Assembly: GCA_025558095.1 (NCBI GenBank)
Contig: JAIVFI010000023.1
Span: forward strand, 186,001-250,000
Source: Hyaloraphidium curvatum SAG 235-1
Lineage: Eukaryota; Fungi; Monoblepharomycota
DNA: 64,000 bases
Direction of reading: 5' to 3'
Positions 3,664-39,141 of this stretch are shown in pieces. Position 1 is the stretch's first letter, and the number at the start of each line of letters is the position of its first letter. The notes beneath the pieces are model-generated. The model was not told the DNA's origin, made no database searches, and saw nothing but the letters and a program-made list of their open reading frames with translations. The translations under genes and the position numbers were made by a program.

Positions 3664-4938
3664 ATGGCGGCCAACGAGCGAGCGCCGCTGCTGGACGGGA
3701 ATCGACCGCTGCGGTCCTTTCTGTCGTCCCTGCGGTCCGTCTTTGCCGGGGATGCCGAAACCGGGGCCTCGGAGGCCCGGCCCTTCCTAGCCGACACCGG
3801 GCCGCAGGTTTCGTCCCCGGTGGTCGATGCCGGGGCCGGGTACCCGGAGTACCCCTCGGCGGAGCCCGTGCCGTCCAAGGAGCGGCCGCCGCGGACCTGG
3901 CCCTGGTGCCTGCTCGCGCTCGTTGTCGTGGGGTCGGCTGTGCTGGCCGTCTGGTTCCTGGCGATCCCGAGGTTCATCGAGTCGCTGATCGCGGGGAACA
4001 CGGGCGGCGCAGACATCGGCCGCGTCGAGCTGGTCGCCTTTGACGACGCGGGGGTGACGGTCGCCGTGCAGGACCTGTCCCTGAAGACCGGCCGCGCCCT
4101 GCCGTTTGCTGCGTTCATGGACGAGGCGCGGTTCGAGGTGCTTTCTTGCGGCCTGCCCAACGCGTCGTCGGGAGCCGCTGACGATGGCGCGCCGGCGTGC
4201 TCGGACCGCGCGGACTTGACCCATCTCTACAAGCTGGACACCCCGAGATTCGTGGTGCCCGGAAGTACCGAGGACCTCTTGCTGTCTTTCCCCGTGCGCG
4301 TGGAGGACCTCAACACCAATCTGGGGGGGCAGATACAGAGGATTCTGGCGCTGAAGGACGCGGCACCCCCCATGTCGTCGCTCGCCAGGGGACGGCCCTC
4401 GGTGGGCATCCAGCTGCTGGGCATCCCTTTCCGGTGGCGCGTGGCGATCGAGCAGGCCATGTCGTTCGACGTGGCCGAGCTGTTCCGCAATGTCTCCAAG
4501 TACGAGCTCTCTTACCAGCTCCTCGCCCACAACGGGTCGTCCGGAGCGCTGCCTTTCCCCTCCGAAGAGTCGCTGGAGTTCAATGCCAGCATGGAGTTCC
4601 GAAATCCGTACCCATTCTCGCTTCGCGACCAACCTTTTGCGGTCGAGCTGCAAGTGTTCACCAACGACTCCAAGAAGGACACCTTCCCCGGGCACCGGCT
4701 GGCGTCGGTGACGATGTACCACCTCGGGCTCGACAGAGGACAGAACCAGCGCAACATCTCGATCTTGACGAATCCCGAGGAGCATGACCGCCTGCTCAGC
4801 CTCGTCGCAAAGGCAGTCCTCCACATTCCGGTGTCGGTTGCCCTTCGACAGGTGCGCCTGGTGGGCGAGAACGTCGTGCCCTGGTGGATGCAGCGCATTG
4901 CGGGGACTATTGATATGGTCATCGATCTTCACAACTAA
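3664..4938 (+). CDS. Single-pass membrane protein, DUF3712/Tag1/LEA-2-like
   Basis: Intronless 424 aa ORF with an N-terminal dileucine-like ERAPLL, one TM helix (WCLLALVVVGSAVLAVWFLAIP) and a beta-rich luminal part with FRNPYPFSL and N-glycosylation sequons. Confidence 0.55.
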   Translation: MAANERAPLLDGNRPLRSFLSSLRSVFAGDAETGASEARPFLADTGPQVSSPVVDAGAGYPEYPSAEPVPSKERPPRTWPWCLLALVVVGSAVLAVWFLAIPRFIESLIAGNTGGADIGRVELVAFDDAGVTVAVQDLSLKTGRALPFAAFMDEARFEVLSCGLPNASSGAADDGAPACSDRADLTHLYKLDTPRFVVPGSTEDLLLSFPVRVEDLNTNLGGQIQRILALKDAAPPMSSLARGRPSVGIQLLGIPFRWRVAIEQAMSFDVAELFRNVSKYELSYQLLAHNGSSGALPFPSEESLEFNASMEFRNPYPFSLRDQPFAVELQVFTNDSKKDTFPGHRLASVTMYHLGLDRGQNQRNISILTNPEEHDRLLSLVAKAVLHIPVSVALRQVRLVGENVVPWWMQRIAGTIDMVIDLHN

Positions 4939-8000: not shown

Positions 8001-10228
8001 CTGAGGTTCTTTGTGATCTCCTCCTCGTCGCCGTCAATCACACCGCCCTGCGCCCAGAGATGATCAGCGCAATATCCGATTCGATTGCCAGGCCGCTCAC
8101 GTTGTACGACGTCGAAAGGTCAATCAAAGCTTTCACATTATCTGTCCACCTATACCAGGATCAGATCGACTTCGCCCAACCGTAAAGCTGTTACCTACGT
8201 GCTCCTCCGTGCAATGAGGGATATGAAGGCCTTGAAGGCTTTGTCGTCGAAAGTGGAGACGATCGACAATAGACGTTCCGTCCTTGATTGATCGTTCGCG
8301 TCCGGGGGGAAGATGTCCTCATGAAGGGTCCTCTCGATCGCAGCCCTTAGTGGTCCGGTTAGCACGGCACACCCGGAGAACCCTGTGAGTCAGCCTACAA
8401 TGCCTCCGGATCGTTCAAGTACACCGCATGCATGAGGTGCGTGGGGATGAAGTCAAACTTCTCCGCTGCTGATGCGATCGCGGTCGCTCTGCGCGACAAG
8501 TGCGAGGATCAATAACTAGAAAACTAAGTGCCCACAAACCTTACCCCTCTCCGTTGGCATTTGCGTACAGCTTGGCCAGAGCTTTGATGGCTTCCTGACG
8601 CACGGAACCCTAGAAACTCTCGTGAGCGGACGAACGACACCGCACGGGGGGGCCCGCACCTTCTTGTCCTTGCATCGTTCACTCAGCTCCGTCAGAACCT
8701 CGGTACCGACAAACGAGACAACAGACGGATGCAGCGATGCAATAGTCCTGATAACGGCCGTCCGTACTTTGTCGTCTGGGTCCCGGATCTTGTGGGCCAG
8801 CACCTCTGGTGCGTACAGTCAAACTCTTATCGGCTTAATGCTCAGAAGCACCCACCGTCCAGCTCGGCAGCGAACTCGGGGTGCGACTTGTAAATCGGCG
8901 CACAACCTTCGATCAGCTTCACCCGGATCGCAACCTCCTTGTCCTTCTCCCTGCAATTCACGTCATGAACGTGCGTTCGTTGCCAGACAAGATCTGCGCC
9001 GCACCTGTTGAGCCACTTCTTCCAGGCTCCGGGGAACGACTTGACGAGCTGCGAGCCTTTCTCGGCAAAGAGGGCAGAAAAGGTGGTGGTGGCAATCTCG
9101 CGTATCTTTGTGTCCTGGAACTGGAGCCCACCAAAGCGTGAGAGCGACGCTGCGTGCCGGGGTACAATTCAATTACCATCAGCTCGTTCTCAAGCACAGG
9201 GATGACGCGATCAAGGGCTGTGGGTGCGTGCTTGTTGATCTCCACGATCAAGTCGTGCTGGGCCTGGACCTCCTCGTAGTTGTCGTCCTCCTTGGCCGAC
9301 AGGATCGTATCAGAGAAGTGCTGAAGAGGCGTTAACAAAGGGGGTTGAGTAGGTTTGTCCAACGCCTCCTACGGTGCAGAAGTAGCGCTGAAGCTGATCC
9401 GAGGTCCCCTTGCACAGATCGACCGCCATCCGGAAAGCCGCGGCATTCTCCTTCTAAAGACCGGCAGGAACGTGAGCAACTGCTCGGTCACCTCCCGCAG
9501 CAGCAAACGTCGCACCTGCCGCTTGGGAGAGAACTGATTGGCAAGCACGTCGATCGCTTCGACGGGGAGGCTGGCGCACTCCTCCACGATCTGCTGCAGC
9601 AAATCCGTCATGCACACTGCGCAGTTCTTTGAGTGCTCCGGCTTGATCGTCTCGAAGAAGTCCTTGAAGAAATCCGCGACCAGGTCGTCCTGTCCTCGCT
9701 GAATGTCGGCGACGAGGACTATGCTCTTGACCGTAGACAGATTCTCAACGAGGTAAAAGTACTTCTGGAAGTACGGCCCCTCGATGTCGGCGATGTTGAG
9801 GAGCTGCCGGCGGAAGAACTCAAAGATCTCCTGCGTCGGCGGGTCAGCCCAAGCACTGCCAGCAGCTGCGTAGGCGGCTCCCACCCTCAACTCCGAGTTG
9901 CTGTACGGCGCGTCCGGAGCGTAGAGGCGGAGAATGTCTGCAATGCAGCAGGCCGTCAGGGCCTTGACGCCCTTGTCCTTGTGCGTCACGAGGGACGGCG
10001 ACACGAGGTCGCGCGTGACGGATGCCAGCGATTCGACGTCGACATCCTCCTGTTCGAACTTTGCCAATTCCTCGTGCAGTTCCTAGTGTAGGCCCGCCGC
10101 GTCAGGAGGGCCGGACCTTCAAGAACCACGGCATGCCCCACTGTGAGCCGTCGGTTCAAATCCGCCGCCGATATGGGCTTCCCAGGCGCCGGGAGCAGCT
10201 TCGCCTTGAACTTCAGCTTCTTCGACAT
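5017..10228 (-). CDS. PDS5: Sister chromatid cohesion protein Pds5 (multi-exon)
   Basis: HKDKGVKALTACCIADILRLYAPDAPYS, FYLVENLSTVKS, DPDDKVRTAV, ERCKDKK and ATAENISYLY are Pds5 HEAT-repeat motifs; acidic/basic low-complexity tail. Confidence 0.95.
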
Positions 10229-32000: not shown

Positions 32001-34136
32001 GTCCTCTTCGACCGCAGAGAAGGCCGTCGGCGGAAACGAATCGTACAGGATTTCGATGGCATCCAAGTACAACGCAAAGTCCTTCCATATCTCCGGCGTC
32101 AGGACGCTGTTGTACGAAGACCAGGGAAACTGAGCCACGGTCAGAGACAGATCCGTCTCCCTCGGAGGCTCGATGTCCCCGGTGTACACCTGATCCAGCA
32201 CGTCGAGCTCTTCGCATCCGCGCAATGTGGACAGAGAACCCGGCTTCACCACGAAGACAGCGTGATAGTAATCGGGGTCCACCAGGATCGCAGCAGGGAT
32301 GTTCAACCGGATTTGGCTCTCGATGCAGAGGTTGAGCAGCTTGGTCCACCTGAGCTTGAGCAGCTCGGCGTTGCGTGCCAAATCCTGCATGCTAGGGAAG
32401 CCCTGTCCCGTTCCGTCCGCAGCAGACATCGCATCCGCCTCGACGAGTCTGCACAGCTCCGCGCGAAGGGCGACGACGTCGTGCTGCCCATCGAAACCGT
32501 TGGCGACGGCCGAATGACCCAGCGACCGAGCGTAATGCCGCAGTGCATCGACCACAGCACCTAACGCAAACCGATTCGGATAAAAGATGTGCTGCAGGAA
32601 AACGTCCGAGACACTGCGCGGCCCAATTTGCGTGCAATCAAAGTCCGGCAGCTCCAACCACGTTGAGCTTGCCCTCAGAACGCTCATCCACTTGTTTGCG
32701 CCTCCCATCGGCTCGATGTCGGATCCATCATCCCACGACGCAACCACTTCGGCGTCGTCGATGGCAATGTAAGCCAACTCCATGTCCTGTTCCTTGATGC
32801 ACAGCGCCCACAAAGTCCAGGCAGCGTTCCCCGAGGTCTTTCCGGCTTCGCCTGCGCCCCGTACCGTTTTCTCCGGGAAGGAAAACGAATCCGGCGTGAT
32901 CTCAAAGTCCACCAGATATCTCTCTGCGACGTTGAGCATGCCACCCGAGTCAGGCTCCCCCAGCGCCGGCGGTGGCTCAATCGAGGATAGCCTATCCAAG
33001 CTGCGCCAACGGAGATCCGGGTCGATCTGACCCTCATAGATGGCAAAGCCATGACCCGGCTGATCCGGCACATGGATCGCTGCTTTGAACGTGAAGCCGC
33101 GACGCGCACCTTCCTGGTCGAATCCATCGGCAGTTTCGAAAAGGTTGCGGTCAAACGTGCGAATAAGCCGCCGTGTCTGTGGTTCCAGTAGCCCGGACGC
33201 GTCTTCCGCACGGCTGGGAGCGTCATCCAAAGCAACTGTCTGCACGAGGCGCTTCTCCAGCAAGCTCCAAATGCGCAGCTTCCGGTCGCGGCAAATTGTG
33301 ACCAAAAACGACGGTCCATAGTCGCCGCACGCAACGCAAGCCATGTCCACGACCTGCAGGGCGGACGACTCAAGCAGGGCCTCCCCTCGGTCCGAAGACT
33401 GATCGGCTCCCTTCCCCAAGCCCAGCCACTGCAAGGGCAGGGACGAGAGACTCGCACCGAGCGTTCGGCGGAGAGCGCTTGTGTCTGGGTTCATGATGTG
33501 TTCTGGGAGCCTGGTCACGGACAGGAGCGAGGCAGGCTCAAACGACCCACCTTGGACAACATCGGCGTTGCTTTCGTCTGCAGAGCTCTCCTGCAGGATC
33601 AAGGTGCCATCGTTGCACGCTATCACGGATGTCGAAAGGTCGGCCGCATGGAAAAGCACGGGGTGGGCCGTCTTCGACCTGTTTCTCAGAGCAGAGATGA
33701 CGTGCTCCGAGCGTTCCGCGCCCCTATCCGGTCTGTCCGAATACAAAAGCAACGGCTGAGGGAACCGGAAACGATGCACGACGCCGTCATTGGTACAAAG
33801 AATGACGGTTGCCGCATCGTCGTGCTCAAAGAAGTGCACCGTCGGTACCACCGGCGAATCAAAGACCAGCCGGACGGGCTGCTGGCGACCAACGCGCTCC
33901 CGCAAGTCCTCTCCACCGTCTGAAGCGTCCATGTAATCCTCTGCGGGCGTCATACGGCTCAATGCCACTATGCGCAGCTCGAGCGTGTTGTCGCCGGCGA
34001 GGAGCCTCCAAACCAGCAGGAACCCGGGATTTCGGTGCAAGACCGCCGCGCCGGCACTGGGTCTGGTATCCAAGCCCCAAGCTCCATCCTCCAAGGGGCC
34101 CTTGTCCAGGAACAGCGATGCTTCCTTGAAGAACAT
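29020..34136 (-). CDS. NUP160: Nucleoporin Nup160/Nup120
   Basis: MFFKE start, LVTICRDRKLRIWSL, FLQHIFYPNRF, LWHNVF..YDDAYDAL, ILYSYYI and C-terminal WFPY. Confidence 0.88.
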
Positions 34137-34390
34137 TGTCCGCGCTTTCGAGGTCGCACCGCAACTCCGCAAGACACGCGCCTTCACGGTCGCCGCTCCA
34201 GCTATAGCATGAACCTATCAAAAAGCGCGAAATGCACGCCTTCCAGAAGCGTCTGAGTGCCAGTCGGCCTAAACCGCACACGGTTTTCGGCGGGTCGGTT
34301 ACGTCGCGCGTCCGCTCGCGATCATCGCAGCACACAGACCGAGTACGTTCGCACCCCCTGCCCGCCCGGTGCCATCGGGCGTACGCGGCC

Positions 34391-35976
34391 ATGAGGAACA
34401 TCTGCGTTTTCGCCGGGTCGTCGCACCCGAAGCTGACGGAGGCGATCTGCGACACTCTCGGTATCCAGCCGGGCAAATGCTCGCTTTCAAAGTTCTCGAA
34501 CCGGGAAACCAACGTGCAAATCGGCGTGTCGGTCCGGCAGAACGACGTCTACATCGTCCAATCTGGCTGCGGAAACGTGAACGACAACTTCATGGAGATG
34601 CTGATCATGGTGTCGGGCTGCAAGATCGCGAGCGCTCGGTGGGACCCTGGAAACCGCAGGCAACGTCCCTGCGGGTCCGGCTGACGCCATCGGCCGTCCG
34701 CAGCAAGGTGGTGGCCGTGATACCGTGCTTTCCTTATGCACGGCAGCCGGAAACTCCGTACAAGAGGGGCACACTGCCGTTGAACCGGGTGCCCGTGGAG
34801 GAAATGGACAAGTTCGCAAGCATGTTCGGCGGTGAGCAAGCAGGAAGTCGCAAAACTCGGTACCGTAACACGGCGTGGTCATTCAGCCAAGGACTACAGC
34901 AACGTCGTGTCCCCGACGCGGGAATCGCAAGGGTCTGCGGCTTCGAACGGGACGGCGGAGCTCGGGGAGGAGGCGCGCGGAAGCCACCGGCCGCCGAACA
35001 GCAACGTCGTGCCTTCGCCGAGCCGTTCCCGACACGCATCCAATTCCGACGGGCTCCCGCTCGGAGACAGAGTTGCCGACGACGCCATCGTCACGAAGCT
35101 CTCCGCGGTACCTCCGACGACTCCGAGCATGGAGCAGGGCACCAGTGGCGGTGTTTTCGTCCCGGGAATCAACCCCAATCCCACGACGGGCTACAAGCAT
35201 TGGGCAGCGCGCTCCGGGACGCTGATAGCGAACCTGCTCATGTGTGCAGGTGCGAGAGCTCATCGTTCCCCTCTCTGTGGTTGAAGGTGACCGACAGGTT
35301 GCAGGCGCTGATCACATCATCACCATGGATCTGCACGACCCGCAGTTCCAAGGCTTTTTCGATATTCCGGTGGACAACCTGTTTTCGCAGCCCCTCATCA
35401 TTCGCTTCATAAAGGACGAGTTTCCGGACTACAAGAACGCAATCATCGTTTCGCCGGACGCGGGGGGTGCGAAGAGGCAAGACTATCGGGCCACTTCTCT
35501 CGCGCATGTCTGACTTGGCTGGTTGTTCACGACAACACAGGGCAACGGCAATAGCGGACCGGCTAGGATGCGACTTTGCGCTGATCCACAAGGACCGGCG
35601 GAGAACAAACAACGGCGGGACCGATTCGCTGATCCTCGTCGGCGACGTGCGAGGCAAAGTTTGCATAATGGTGGACGACATCGCGGACACGTGCCTGACG
35701 CTGACGAAGGCCGCGCGCGTGCTCGTAGACAACGGCGCGACGCGGATTGCCGCGATTGTCACGCACGGCATCATGTCGGGAGACGCCGTAGAGCGCATCC
35801 GCTCCTCTGCCATCGACGAACTAATTGTGAGCAACACCGTGCCGCAGGAGGCTCATCTGGAGAAGCTTGGGCCGAGCCGGCTGCGCGTGTTTGATGTGGC
35901 GCCTCTGCTGGCGGAAGCGATTCGGCGGGTTCACAACGGAGAATCGCTGTCGCTACTTTTCGAGAATATGAATTAG
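34391..35976 (+). CDS. PRS5: Ribose-phosphate pyrophosphokinase, fungal Prs5-type with a long insertion
   Basis: [21 protein letters not shown] followed by a long Ser/Pro-rich insert, [36 protein letters not shown] and [11 protein letters not shown]. Confidence 0.9.
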
Positions 35977-36012
35977 CATGTTGACGTTCGCACACATTCC
36001 TGCTGGGACTGC

Positions 36013-37130
36013 CTAGGACCACCCAGTCCACTCCGTCGAGTAGTATTTCGGCGGCCCTTCTTCGGAGGCAATGGCGACAAGGCGGTTCTTCTTGACCACC
36101 GTCCCCAACCTGCCGAGCGTCACGATGTCCACAAGGGGTATCTTGGTGCACGGACCGACGACCGTCACGGTGAAATGGCTATGGTAGCGAAGCGGATCCC
36201 CTGATGTCATGGTCAGCAATGTGCAGCCTTCGTCCATTCTGGCCGCACACACCAGGGTAAGCCAGGTAATTAGCGCCAAACTTGGATCCGGATGAAAGGA
36301 ACAGACCGCGCTTCCAGAGATCGTAAAACACGGCCGCCCGGTTGCATTCTTGCTCCCTTTTCGGCCAGGGAAACGCCGACTTTGCTGCCGGAGCTGGGCG
36401 ATACCACGGCAAGTCGGCCGAACTCGTCTTGACCCGCGAGAGCAGCGAATCCGAAGCCGTGGTCCGCTTCTGTCCCACCGTGTCCGCTGCAGGATCCTCC
36501 GAAACCTCCGAGAAAAGAACTGAATCAACCTCGGTCGCGGACGGTCCCGAGGCGACATCAGCGGCTTCGGCCAGAGCCCTGACTTCGGGCCTAAACCGCT
36601 TCGAACGCTCGGCCGCGGCTGCTTCGAGCCGTTTGTTGCGCACATCCATCGCCCAGGCCCGCTCGGCGGCGTCGAACTCGGCAATCTCTTTCGATGTCGG
36701 CGGACTGTGCGCCTCGTCGTCGCGATACAGATTGCACAAACCTTGGGCGCAAAAAGCGTCTGAGCCCAGGATGCAAACCGTTGGAACCTTACGCACCTTC
36801 CTGCACAAGAACGTAGACTTCCTCCGGCAGGAGAGAGAGCGGCATGGAGAAGAAGATGTTCTGCTGCGGGTTCCGGGGGAGGCTGCCTATGAGGGAGCCA
36901 ACGATCCGATGCTTCGTCCGCAAGGTGAGCACATCTGAGCGGTCTTTCAAGTTAAAGGAGGAACGGGGACGCATCCGGGTGGGGAGCGTGGACGCACCGT
37001 CGGGTGCCCACACGAACGCATTGGAACCGTTCGTGCTGACCGCGATCCTCCGATCCTGCCGGGGTTCGACGGCAACAATCTCCCCAGGAGGAGATGCACT
37101 GCTGGTCGAGCCCTCGGCCGTAGCATCCAT
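36013..37130 (-). CDS. SEN34: tRNA-splicing endonuclease catalytic subunit Sen34
   Basis: [65 protein letters not shown] and GRLGTVVKK (Tyr/His/Lys triad). Confidence 0.95.
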
Positions 37131-38074
37131 GTTGCCCACCCCCGACACGGGGCACCTGAGGAGGTCCGAGTTCCGCGACGTCTACGAGCCCGCAGGTCCT
37201 GGGGGCCGAGAATCGGCCAATCGCGGGCGCCTGAATGTACCTCTGCACAGAGGATACCTTTCTGCTCCTCGATGCGCTCGACGGAGACGCCGATGAGCTA
37301 CTTGCCAGGGGGCCGACTGTTTGCGTCGAACTCGGGTGAGCCTTCACGGTCCCGGAGTGCCGTGCCCCAAACCAACTCTGCTCCCCAGATGCGGATCCGG
37401 TTGCGTTTCTGCCTTTCTGGCGCGCCTATTGGGTCCCACGACTGCTGGTAAGGAGCGCGATTCGCACGCACGGAGCAACCTTCCAACTGGGACCGCGGGC
37501 ACCCCCAGTCACGTACTGCGTGGACATAAACGGGGCCGCCCTGAGGGCGACGCGCGAAACAGCATTGAGGAACTCGGTACGGCAGCATGTGGGCCCGGGC
37601 AAAGGCGGACCCGGTGACGGGATCGGAGCAGGTGCAGCTCGACATTGTCCGGGCCGATCTCGCGGCTCCCTTTCTCAAGCGGCTGAGCGGATCGGTTGAC
37701 GTCCTGCTGTTCAATCCGCCGTACGTGCCAACGGACTCGTCCGAGATTGCTGGAGACGGCATTGCGGCCAGCTGGGCCGGTGGGACGGAAGGGATGGAGG
37801 TCACCAACCGGCTGCTTCCCCATGTCCAGGTGGGGCTCACGGATCCCGCAGAAGGCTACCCGGTTATGACCTCGGCTCCCAAACCCAGGCGCTCCTTTCT
37901 CCAGGGGGGGTGTTCTACCTAATCGCGGTCGCGGAGAACAAGCCCGATCGGATCCTCGAAACGATGCGCCGCGACCATGGCTTGCCCGGGAAAGTGGTCA
38001 TCGAGCGGTCGGCCGGTCGCGAGCGGCTTTCTGTGCTGAGATTCGACAAAGCTCGGTCGCGGGCACCGCTGTGA
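37129..38074 (+). CDS. MTQ2: eRF1 Gln methyltransferase Mtq2/HEMK2/N6AMT1
   Basis: MLPTP...DVYEPAEDTFLLLDAL, VELGCGSGCV, VDVLLFNPPYVPT, WAGGTEGMEVT and ERLSVLRF. Confidence 0.96.
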
Positions 38075-38457
38075 CTCTACATTGGTGCGCGAACTGGCTC
38101 TGACTCTACATTGTGGGGCGAAAGGGTGATGCGTTCCCGTCGCTGCGACTGCAACTGCGTCCCCGCCGCTGCTTCCCTTGCTAGCCTTGCCGCGGAGCGG
38201 CCCCGCGAGCGCCAGCGAGCCCCGCGTCAGCGGGCACGTTGCCCGCCGCAGGCCCGCTCCCCCGCCGCTGCCTCCCTTGCTAGCTTTGCCGCGGAGCGGC
38301 CCCCGAGCGGCAGCGAGGCAAACCGGATGGGCGCGGCAAGTGCGGGAGGCGGGCCGGAGATGTCGCGGAGGCCGGGAAACGGCGGGGCGGGGCCGGGACG
38401 GGAGTCGATTTCAGGGTACAGGGGTATCGGCAGCCTTGGGCGACCGCTGCTGGGTAT
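38056..38457. repeat. Non-coding insert with internal direct repeats; possible non-autonomous element
   Basis: TGACTCTACATTG twice (38072, 38101); ~60 bp unit CCCCGCCGCTGCYTCCCTTGCTAGCYTTGCCGCGGAGCGGCCCC twice (~38161, ~38260); 32/37 nt match to 26555-26591 in the TE island. Confidence 0.55.
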
Positions 38458-38492
38458 AAGCTCGTGCGCCTCCGTGGCAACGCCGCGTCGTG

Positions 38493-39141
38493 CTATCGAA
38501 ACAGCTTCAGATAGAACCATAGGAATGTCAACGTCGACACCGCAAAGGCCATCAGAATGCACATCCTGTGGCGGCCAGAGGTGAGGCCCGGGCTGCAATG
38601 CGACCAAGCGAGGTCTCTGACCAGCATCCTGCCTGCGTTTTCATGATGTGCGTCAGCCGGCCCATAGTTGTGCCCAGAATGCCCCCTGTCCGGTACATGT
38701 CGTCTTGCTGGACGTGTTTACGAGACGTCAAAGACTGCGTGACCGCTCCGGCCTGCCCGGCACACCGACCATCTGCTTGAACCACTCGCTCTGGCTCCGG
38801 ACCTCCTCTCCAATTTGTAGAGAAACCTCCTTGAGCACTCCAAGCTTCTGCTGGAGCGACTCCACGTGCTCCTCATTCTCCTGTTCCAATAGGTACGCGT
38901 CGCCGGCCGAGTGCAGCGGCTGTCCGTTGTTCACCGGATGCCGGTGATGCATGCGAGGAGTCCCGCCAGCAAGAGCCGGAGACGGTCCCGGCTGTGGGGA
39001 CGGATACCGCCTGGCAAGTCCGAGGCGACAACGTGCACGACGAGGCGGGGGCCGGCCAGGGCAACCCGATAGAAGCGTCATTAGGAAGTACGGTCTTGCG
39101 AAAGTGGAAGAGACGTACGCTAGGCCCCGTGGCCGACTCAT
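38493..39141 (-). CDS. BET1: Qc-SNARE Bet1-like
   Basis: LEQENEEHVESLQQKLGVLKEVSLQIGEEVRSQ SNARE heptads, GGILGTTMGRL and a spliced C-terminal TM (WMCILMAFAVSTLTFLWFYL). Confidence 0.88.

Follow-up and report, generated by a model that had tools for sequence, protein, structure and literature searches.

In strongly compacted eukaryotic genomes, such as those of microsporidia, nucleomorphs and Giardia, little or no DNA separates the genes, start sites fall within neighbours, and leaders overlap one another or are very short. In mammals, head-to-head overlap takes the form of overlapping 5' untranslated regions (UTRs) or of alternative long 5' isoforms, and is not known to extend to the initiation codons. 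Bidirectional promoters of divergent housekeeping genes are known in human, plants and fungi (for example PMC2648788, PMC10887517, PMC6900853). Here we analyse two divergent housekeeping genes, SEN34 (tRNA splicing) and MTQ2 (eRF1 methylation), whose start codons overlap within a single CATG in a 64,000-nucleotide stretch of the Hyaloraphidium curvatum genome (contig C23:186001-250000 of a 31.9-Mb assembly in 55 contigs; hereafter the window). Our analysis makes it likely that these genes form a real, expressed divergent pair in which the intergenic DNA has collapsed to nothing, and which is driven by a compact bidirectional promoter within coding DNA.

The shared CATG, read directly from the sequence at window positions 37128..37131, serves both strands: the SEN34 ATG is at 37130..37128 on the minus strand and the MTQ2 ATG at 37129-37131 on the plus strand, such that the two genes diverge from opposite strands and their coding sequences overlap by 2 nt (a spacing of -2 nt). 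A first-pass annotation of the window had reported this CATG and the -2 nt distance from the letters alone; the CATG is present as described, and the distance now rests on RNA-supported models of both genes. The same annotation had named an assembly collapse at 37128-37131 as a danger to its reading. This is ruled out, since an RNA contig that spans the CATG is colinear with the genome over 36998-37171, free of mismatches and gaps, and the stretch around the tetramer occurs only once in the genome. The tetramer itself is unremarkable, with 283 copies in the window; the weight of the finding lies in two real genes reading from it.

The identity of both genes was established by homology searches made exon by exon, together with the public Sen34 protein (P0001, NCBI, 284 aa). 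For MTQ2, the open reading frame (ORF) at 37587-37919 matches the N6AMT1/HEMK2 structures 6khs, 6h1d and 8cnc (E = 2e-13) and the microsporidian Mtq2 structure 3q87 (9e-4), and it carries the NPPY motif of the class I methyltransferase core as LLFNPPYVP. The start of this gene, which the first-pass annotation had placed at the plus-strand ATG opening MLPTPDTGHLRRSEFRDVYEPA, is fixed by the pattern M(L/F/I)PTP...VYEPAEDTF, and the N-terminus is kept in relatives: it reads MLPTPD in the window and in one diverged relative (L001), MFPTPD in a second (L002) and MIPTPD at a distant, fungus-like locus (L008). For SEN34, residues 194-271 of P0001 match PF01974 (tRNA_int_endo) with E = 3.2e-16 and 59.6 bits at a cut-off of 27, and the exon ORF taken from the window alone scores 25.5 bits against the same model. 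A profile of SEN34 exon 2 aligns with residues 22-58 of the human TSEN34 chains 7zrz, 8iss, 8hmy and 7uxa (E ~2e-5), and the Sen34-type N-domain pattern LR..x..G..G.LPR.PQQN ... LPEE is present. Because the exon 2 alignment begins at human residue 22, about 20 conserved residues must precede it and be encoded upstream of intron 1. A match to PF26577 (TSEN34_N) is precomputed for P0001; single exons gave no Pfam match at the Sen34 N-terminus, the Pfam copy used having no PF26577 model, and the exon 1 profile found only a chance match among solved structures. In addition, VVKKNRL can be read in the Sen34 translations as a candidate region of the catalytic Tyr/His/Lys triad.

Expression was assessed from the only public sequencing run found to contain the stretch, available as unstranded contigs assembled from 31-letter words. 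All 8 introns of SEN34 and MTQ2 are missing from contigs of this run, and each has GT..AG ends in the sense of its gene, which shows that the run, although labelled 'RNA?', is RNA-derived. On the minus strand, SEN34 exon 1 (36998..37130, 133 nt) holds a single Met, at position 1, and is linked to exon 2 by the RNA joint 36934>36998, which removes intron 1 (36935..36997, 63 nt, GTGCGT..CAG, phase 1, in frame and stop-free). Exon 2 (36797..36934, 138 nt), which encodes the conserved N-domain block, is supported by RNA, by the relatives and by human TSEN34. It is followed by intron 2 (36742..36796, 55 nt), exon 3 (36253..36741, 489 nt, where the tRNA_int_endo match begins), intron 3 (36201..36252, 52 nt) and exon 4 (36013..36200), which completes the catalytic C-terminal domain and ends in the stop TAG 36015..36013; RNA joints with GT..AG ends define both introns, and RNA contigs cover both exons. 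The resulting four-exon model encodes 315 aa. On the plus strand, MTQ2 exon 1 (37129..37195, 67 nt, MLPTPD...VYEPA), supported by an RNA joint and by its conserved N-terminus, is followed by intron 1 (37196..37250, 55 nt, with the weak donor GTCCTG) and by exons 2-6 (37251-37335, 37389-37447, 37509-37576, 37632-37829 and 37889-38074), which are separated by RNA-supported introns and contained in one 609-nt spliced contig; the model is 220 aa long. Both fully spliced mRNAs are thus present together in a single run. When depth bins were recomputed from the listed contig pieces, no retention was found among the contigs for the SEN34 introns or for MTQ2 introns 2-5. MTQ2 intron 1, which adjoins the SEN34 start, is the only one of the 8 also seen unspliced, in a 112-nt contig over 37166-37277 with a stated depth of 2349, compared with 668 for the spliced path and 721 for MTQ2 exons 2-6. 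The contig graph further implies that RNA over 37142-37295, from MTQ2 exon 1 across intron 1 into the first part of exon 2, is far deeper than the body of either mRNA.

The SEN34 start codon deserves particular attention, as the first-pass annotation had called it the only in-frame ATG upstream of the conserved Sen34 block. Exon-by-exon reading bears this out for the spliced mRNA, where the ATG of the CATG is the sole in-frame Met ahead of the block, but not for the unspliced frame, in which a second in-frame ATG that went unmentioned (36974..36972, residue 53) also lies upstream of the HRIVG..PQQN block. This second ATG is situated within the RNA-supported intron 36935-36997. The splice gives ...NAFVWAPD|DVLTLRTKH..., and the spliced Sen34 is predicted to yield the N-terminal peptide MDATAEG... 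as well as ...FVWAPDDVLTLR. Within it, residues 28-44 (RIAVSTNGSNAFVWAPD) form the conserved start of the Sen34 N-domain, preceded by a low-complexity extension (residues 1-27) that varies among the lineages. The context of the SEN34 ATG is strong, with A at -3 and G at +4.

The same arrangement occurs in two diverged genomic contigs (L001 and L002). In L001, MTQ2 opens with the ATG at 9862..9860 and SEN34 with its sole possible ATG at 9843, a coding overlap of 20 nt (-20); L002 has these start codons at 4514..4512 (MTQ2) and 4520 (SEN34), leaving a 5-nt spacer (+5). The flanks are alike in the window and in both relatives, with PRS and Nup120 on one side and Ribosomal_L16 on the other. Identity between the window and the relatives is 65-73% in MTQ2 exon 5 and SEN34 exon 4, 38-45% in SEN34 exon 3, and 82% in SEN34 exon 2 for both relatives. 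That the arrangement is shared at an identity of only 65-73% indicates that it is old. The position of SEN34 intron 1, after AFVWxx(D/E), is likewise common to both relatives, whose introns measure 89 and 73 nt and contain stops or frameshifts. The 16-17 residues before this junction are conserved in all three lineages, and the 20-35 residues ahead of them vary freely in length and sequence. Such free variation fits former intergenic or leader DNA that would be translated because it holds the first AUG. Judged by these alignments, the tight head-to-head spacing is conserved and the exact CATG is not, with the SEN34 start wandering around a fixed MTQ2 start. L001 9843-9862 is a 20-nt stretch that codes on both strands, for the opening MSGVGS of Sen34 (six codons) and, antisense to it, for the opening MLPTPDI of Mtq2 (seven codons); the window has GTG at the site of the L001 SEN34 ATG. 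Beyond these three lineages, no SEN34 was found near MTQ2 at two more distant MTQ2 loci (L007 and L008), which have other neighbours. Profiles of SEN34 exons 2 and 3 retrieved no further relatives in two metagenome scans, and a word search with an MTQ2 exon returned short or distant contigs only. The two genes are not known to be linked in budding or fission yeast either.

With no DNA between the coding sequences, the leader and core promoter of each gene must lie in the partner gene. The first-pass annotation had drawn this conclusion, which follows from the -2 nt spacing, and had offered nearly leaderless mRNAs as an alternative. The alternative does not hold for both mRNAs together, as RNA is continuous across the CATG: a contig built of 31-letter words can cross it only if the SEN34 and MTQ2 leaders sum to at least 28 nt. 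Barring a gap closed by DNA or by read-through RNA, this requires at least 30 nt of antisense 5' overlap. On the SEN34 side, the depth of the unspliced contig over MTQ2 intron 1, which exceeds both that of the spliced path and that of exons 2-6, makes MTQ2 pre-mRNA an unlikely source, and suggests that an antisense SEN34 leader reaching at least to ~37277 best explains this RNA. On the MTQ2 side, the lack of unspliced RNA over the SEN34 intron 36935-36997 implies that MTQ2 transcription starts within 36998-37128. The nearest upstream ATG in the MTQ2 sense, at 37094, starts an out-of-frame ORF of 9 codons (37094..37123, plus strand), with 5 nt left between its end and the MTQ2 ATG. This suggests that the MTQ2 leader either is under 35 nt long or includes a small upstream ORF. 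Upstream of the SEN34 start, on the minus strand, there is no ATG over 37131..37527, a 397-nt stretch that is a candidate leader and promoter zone within MTQ2. The corresponding runs are 183 nt in L001 and 100 nt in L002, and in each of the three lineages the first AUG is in frame; the 397-nt run is suggestive, not decisive. MTQ2 intron 1 contains a CCAAT box; it was considered as a SEN34 promoter element and rejected, as it is not conserved in the relatives.

These observations can be accommodated by one compact bidirectional promoter, embedded in transcribed and coding DNA, that would drive both genes. SEN34 transcription would begin in the 5' part of MTQ2, somewhere between exon 1 and the start of exon 2 with intron 1 included, and run antisense through the MTQ2 start. 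MTQ2 transcription would begin inside SEN34 exon 1, in its first ~130 nt and probably at a distance of under 35 nt from the MTQ2 ATG. Ribosomes scanning the SEN34 leader would take the first AUG, which coincides with the MTQ2 AUG or sits next to it and is in frame by chance, and former intergenic DNA would in this way be translated as a variable, low-complexity N-terminal tail of 20-35 residues on Sen34. The exact sharing of CATG would then be a by-product of geometry and not a selected device, the tight linkage being what is conserved.

Several points weigh against this explanation. The tool that provides the contig depths warns that parts of a gene should not be ranked by depth; moreover, unstranded contigs cannot show ends, strand or local depth. 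Continuity of a contig is not proof of a single transcript, as a 7,577-nt RNA contig passes through several genes, SEN34 and PRS among them. The explanation does not account for a fork at 37141/37142 and an unlisted bridging contig (~54 nt, high depth), both implied by the contig graph. The unspliced form of MTQ2 intron 1 could reflect true retention at the weak donor GTCCTG. The 397-nt ATG-free run is only the 9th longest of 845 in the window (8 are longer), and is partly a consequence of GC-rich codon usage. No promoter motif conserved among the three lineages was found in their alignment, and the N-terminal extension of Sen34 is a predicted translation.

Four other explanations were weighed against the compact bidirectional promoter. 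The first is that the antisense 5' overlap is a regulatory device by which transcriptional interference or double-stranded RNA would tie the expression of SEN34 and MTQ2 together or set one against the other; the first-pass annotation had proposed a coupling of tRNA splicing and eRF1 methylation along these lines. It has in its favour the antisense overlap of at least 30 nt that the RNA contig requires, the retention of the tight arrangement in three lineages, and a human parallel, the head-to-head overlapping pair INO80E/HIRIP3, which is reported to depend on sense/antisense interplay (PMC11890862). In the present locus, however, the spliced SEN34 and MTQ2 mRNAs coexist in the same run, the geometry of the overlap drifts across lineages (-20, -2 and +5), and the two genes are not linked at the two more distant loci. 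We know of no functional link between Sen34 and Mtq2 beyond translation-related housekeeping. The proposed coupling is thus unsupported, and a regulatory role of the overlap in either direction appears unlikely.

A second explanation concerns only the extra RNA over ~37142-37290, which might be a separate short transcript (a promoter-proximal or small RNA) in place of a SEN34 leader. A step in depth and the implied fork at 37141/37142 are compatible with such a transcript, as are 174,251 depth*nt unaccounted for in the bin 37110-37223. However, part of the stretch is a conserved coding exon, the genome holds no second copy of it, and the contig depths on which the argument depends are unreliable. 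Two further results count against a separate RNA: Rfam contains no family that matches the deep stretch 37142-37295, and folding of this stretch gives no signal on either strand (z = -0.25 and +0.49). We consider a separate transcript quite unlikely.

According to a third explanation, SEN34 is transcribed from downstream of 37130 (in the direction of its own reading) and translated from a non-AUG codon near residue 28. The genes would then be ~80 nt or less apart, with no shared start codons and no N-terminal extension on Sen34. Residues 1-27 are indeed conserved neither in length nor in sequence, and human TSEN34 begins roughly where the conserved block starts. Yet all three lineages present an open frame with exactly one in-frame ATG before the block and an ATG-free stretch ahead of it, the ATG in the window stands in the strong context given above, and RNA is continuous to 37171 and beyond. 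Sole initiation at a non-AUG codon is rare, which weighs in the same direction, and this possibility is a very slim one.

The weakest explanation, that the public annotation is correct and Sen34 starts at ATG 36974..36972 in an intron-retaining mRNA, which would leave the coding sequences 154 nt apart without overlap, can draw on the start of P0001 at exactly this ATG and on a 63-nt intron that is in frame, stop-free and hence translatable when retained, but is highly improbable given that only the spliced form occurs among the contigs (0 retain the intron, and the spliced contig fully accounts for the depth of the bin 36882-36995), that the relatives' introns at the same codon position are unreadable in frame, and that such a start would exchange the conserved RIAVSTNGSNAFVW strand for intron-coded residues. 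The public 284-aa model is wrong, as its start codon lies in an intron: relative to the RNA-based model, P0001 lacks 44 true N-terminal residues, including the conserved strand, and adds 17 intron-coded ones. The gene caller was probably misled by the in-frame, stop-free intron. Our analysis thus corrects a public gene model, and errors of this type are probably typical wherever annotation avoids overlapping coding sequences.

The surroundings of the pair place its spacing in context. Nup120 (minus strand) and PRS (plus strand) also stand head to head, at window 34134-34393, with an ordinary spacer of ~254 nt between their inferred ATGs; next to this neighbour, the SEN34-MTQ2 spacing is a local extreme. 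PRS (plus strand) and SEN34 (minus strand) converge with 36 nt between their stop codons (window 35976-36013). Given this gap and the 7,577-nt contig that runs through several genes, the 3' ends must overlap, and overlapping transcript ends are not unusual here. Right after the MTQ2 stop, over 38022-38800, RNA depth is in the thousands and loose ends are many. The contigs there are only 90-99% alike, positions 38186 and 38201 carry small indels, and the joint 38108>38252 includes foreign letters, which suggests a repeat origin or very high expression. Transposon islands are found in the same window.

Whether the sharing of start codons recurs in this genome was also considered. Elsewhere, a CCATGG at positions 2169-2174 of locus L005 (contig C10, ~246,601-246,606) separates an ERMARD-like (DUF4209) gene from eIF3i and carries the start of the ERMARD-like frame. 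For eIF3i to share this CCATGG, a one-codon first exon (ATG) and a 61-nt intron (GTGGGC..ACAG) are needed, which give MRPILLHGHER; an in-frame ATG 43 nt downstream, opening MRRCRRQRPILL, is an equally simple start. Sharing at this second locus is possible but ambiguous. More broadly, CATG sharing or near-zero head-to-head spacing could be a recurrent architecture of the Hyaloraphidium lineage, with the promoters of a sizeable class of divergent pairs absorbed into coding sequence, spacings piled up at the -2 limit, and short mRNAs that overlap antisense at their 5' ends, all in a free-living fungus that shows no other genome reduction. We put this forward tentatively, as a doubtful generalisation. 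An annotation-free, genome-wide count of CATG-sharing pairs was judged unreliable, because false positives would swamp the handful of true pairs: the window has 142 open frames of at least 150 codons, CATG occurs at roughly 4,400 sites per Mb, the bias in GC content at third codon positions (GC3) is moderate, and an antisense frame that shares wobble positions mimics coding sequence. A search of the literature on Hyaloraphidium found nothing on nuclear genome compaction. If it is true that such pairs recur, head-to-head distances would show a limit to genome compaction that is set by the start codons.

The SEN34-MTQ2 pair by itself reveals no new mechanism. It is a natural test case, conserved in three lineages, for promoters and leaders that work inside coding DNA, and on the explanation favoured here it shows how intergenic DNA can become a disordered protein tail through the first-AUG rule alone.

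Compared with known systems, the pair resembles the overlaps of adjoining frame boundaries in prokaryotic operons (ATGA, TGATG) in that 1-4 nt are shared at a short fixed motif. Those genes, however, are co-directional, lie on one mRNA and are translationally coupled, whereas SEN34 and MTQ2 are on opposite strands and have separate mRNAs, such that no coupling of this kind is possible. With microsporidia, nucleomorphs and Giardia it has the vanishing spacer in common, but those genomes are globally reduced, and H. curvatum is a free-living organism with a genome of 31.9 Mb. Like the mammalian head-to-head overlapping pairs, of which INO80E/HIRIP3 is an example (PMC11890862), the two genes are divergent; they would also share with those pairs an antisense overlap at their 5' ends and the position of each promoter in the transcription unit of the other. 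The present locus differs in having zero non-coding DNA between the coding sequences, and introns of 52-63 nt. The pair also resembles those served by bidirectional promoters of housekeeping genes: there, too, two expressed housekeeping genes are arranged head to head, and the linkage is kept from species to species. In the classical cases, the promoter is intergenic, with tens to hundreds of bp between the start sites, whereas the promoter predicted here lies inside coding exons and a 55-nt intron. The pair is, thus, an extreme and not an unprecedented form of two-way promoter, head-to-head pairs and bidirectional promoters being well known. What sets it apart is an overlap that reaches the initiation codons, in a free-living fungus with a genome of ordinary size, and the conservation of this arrangement in three lineages.

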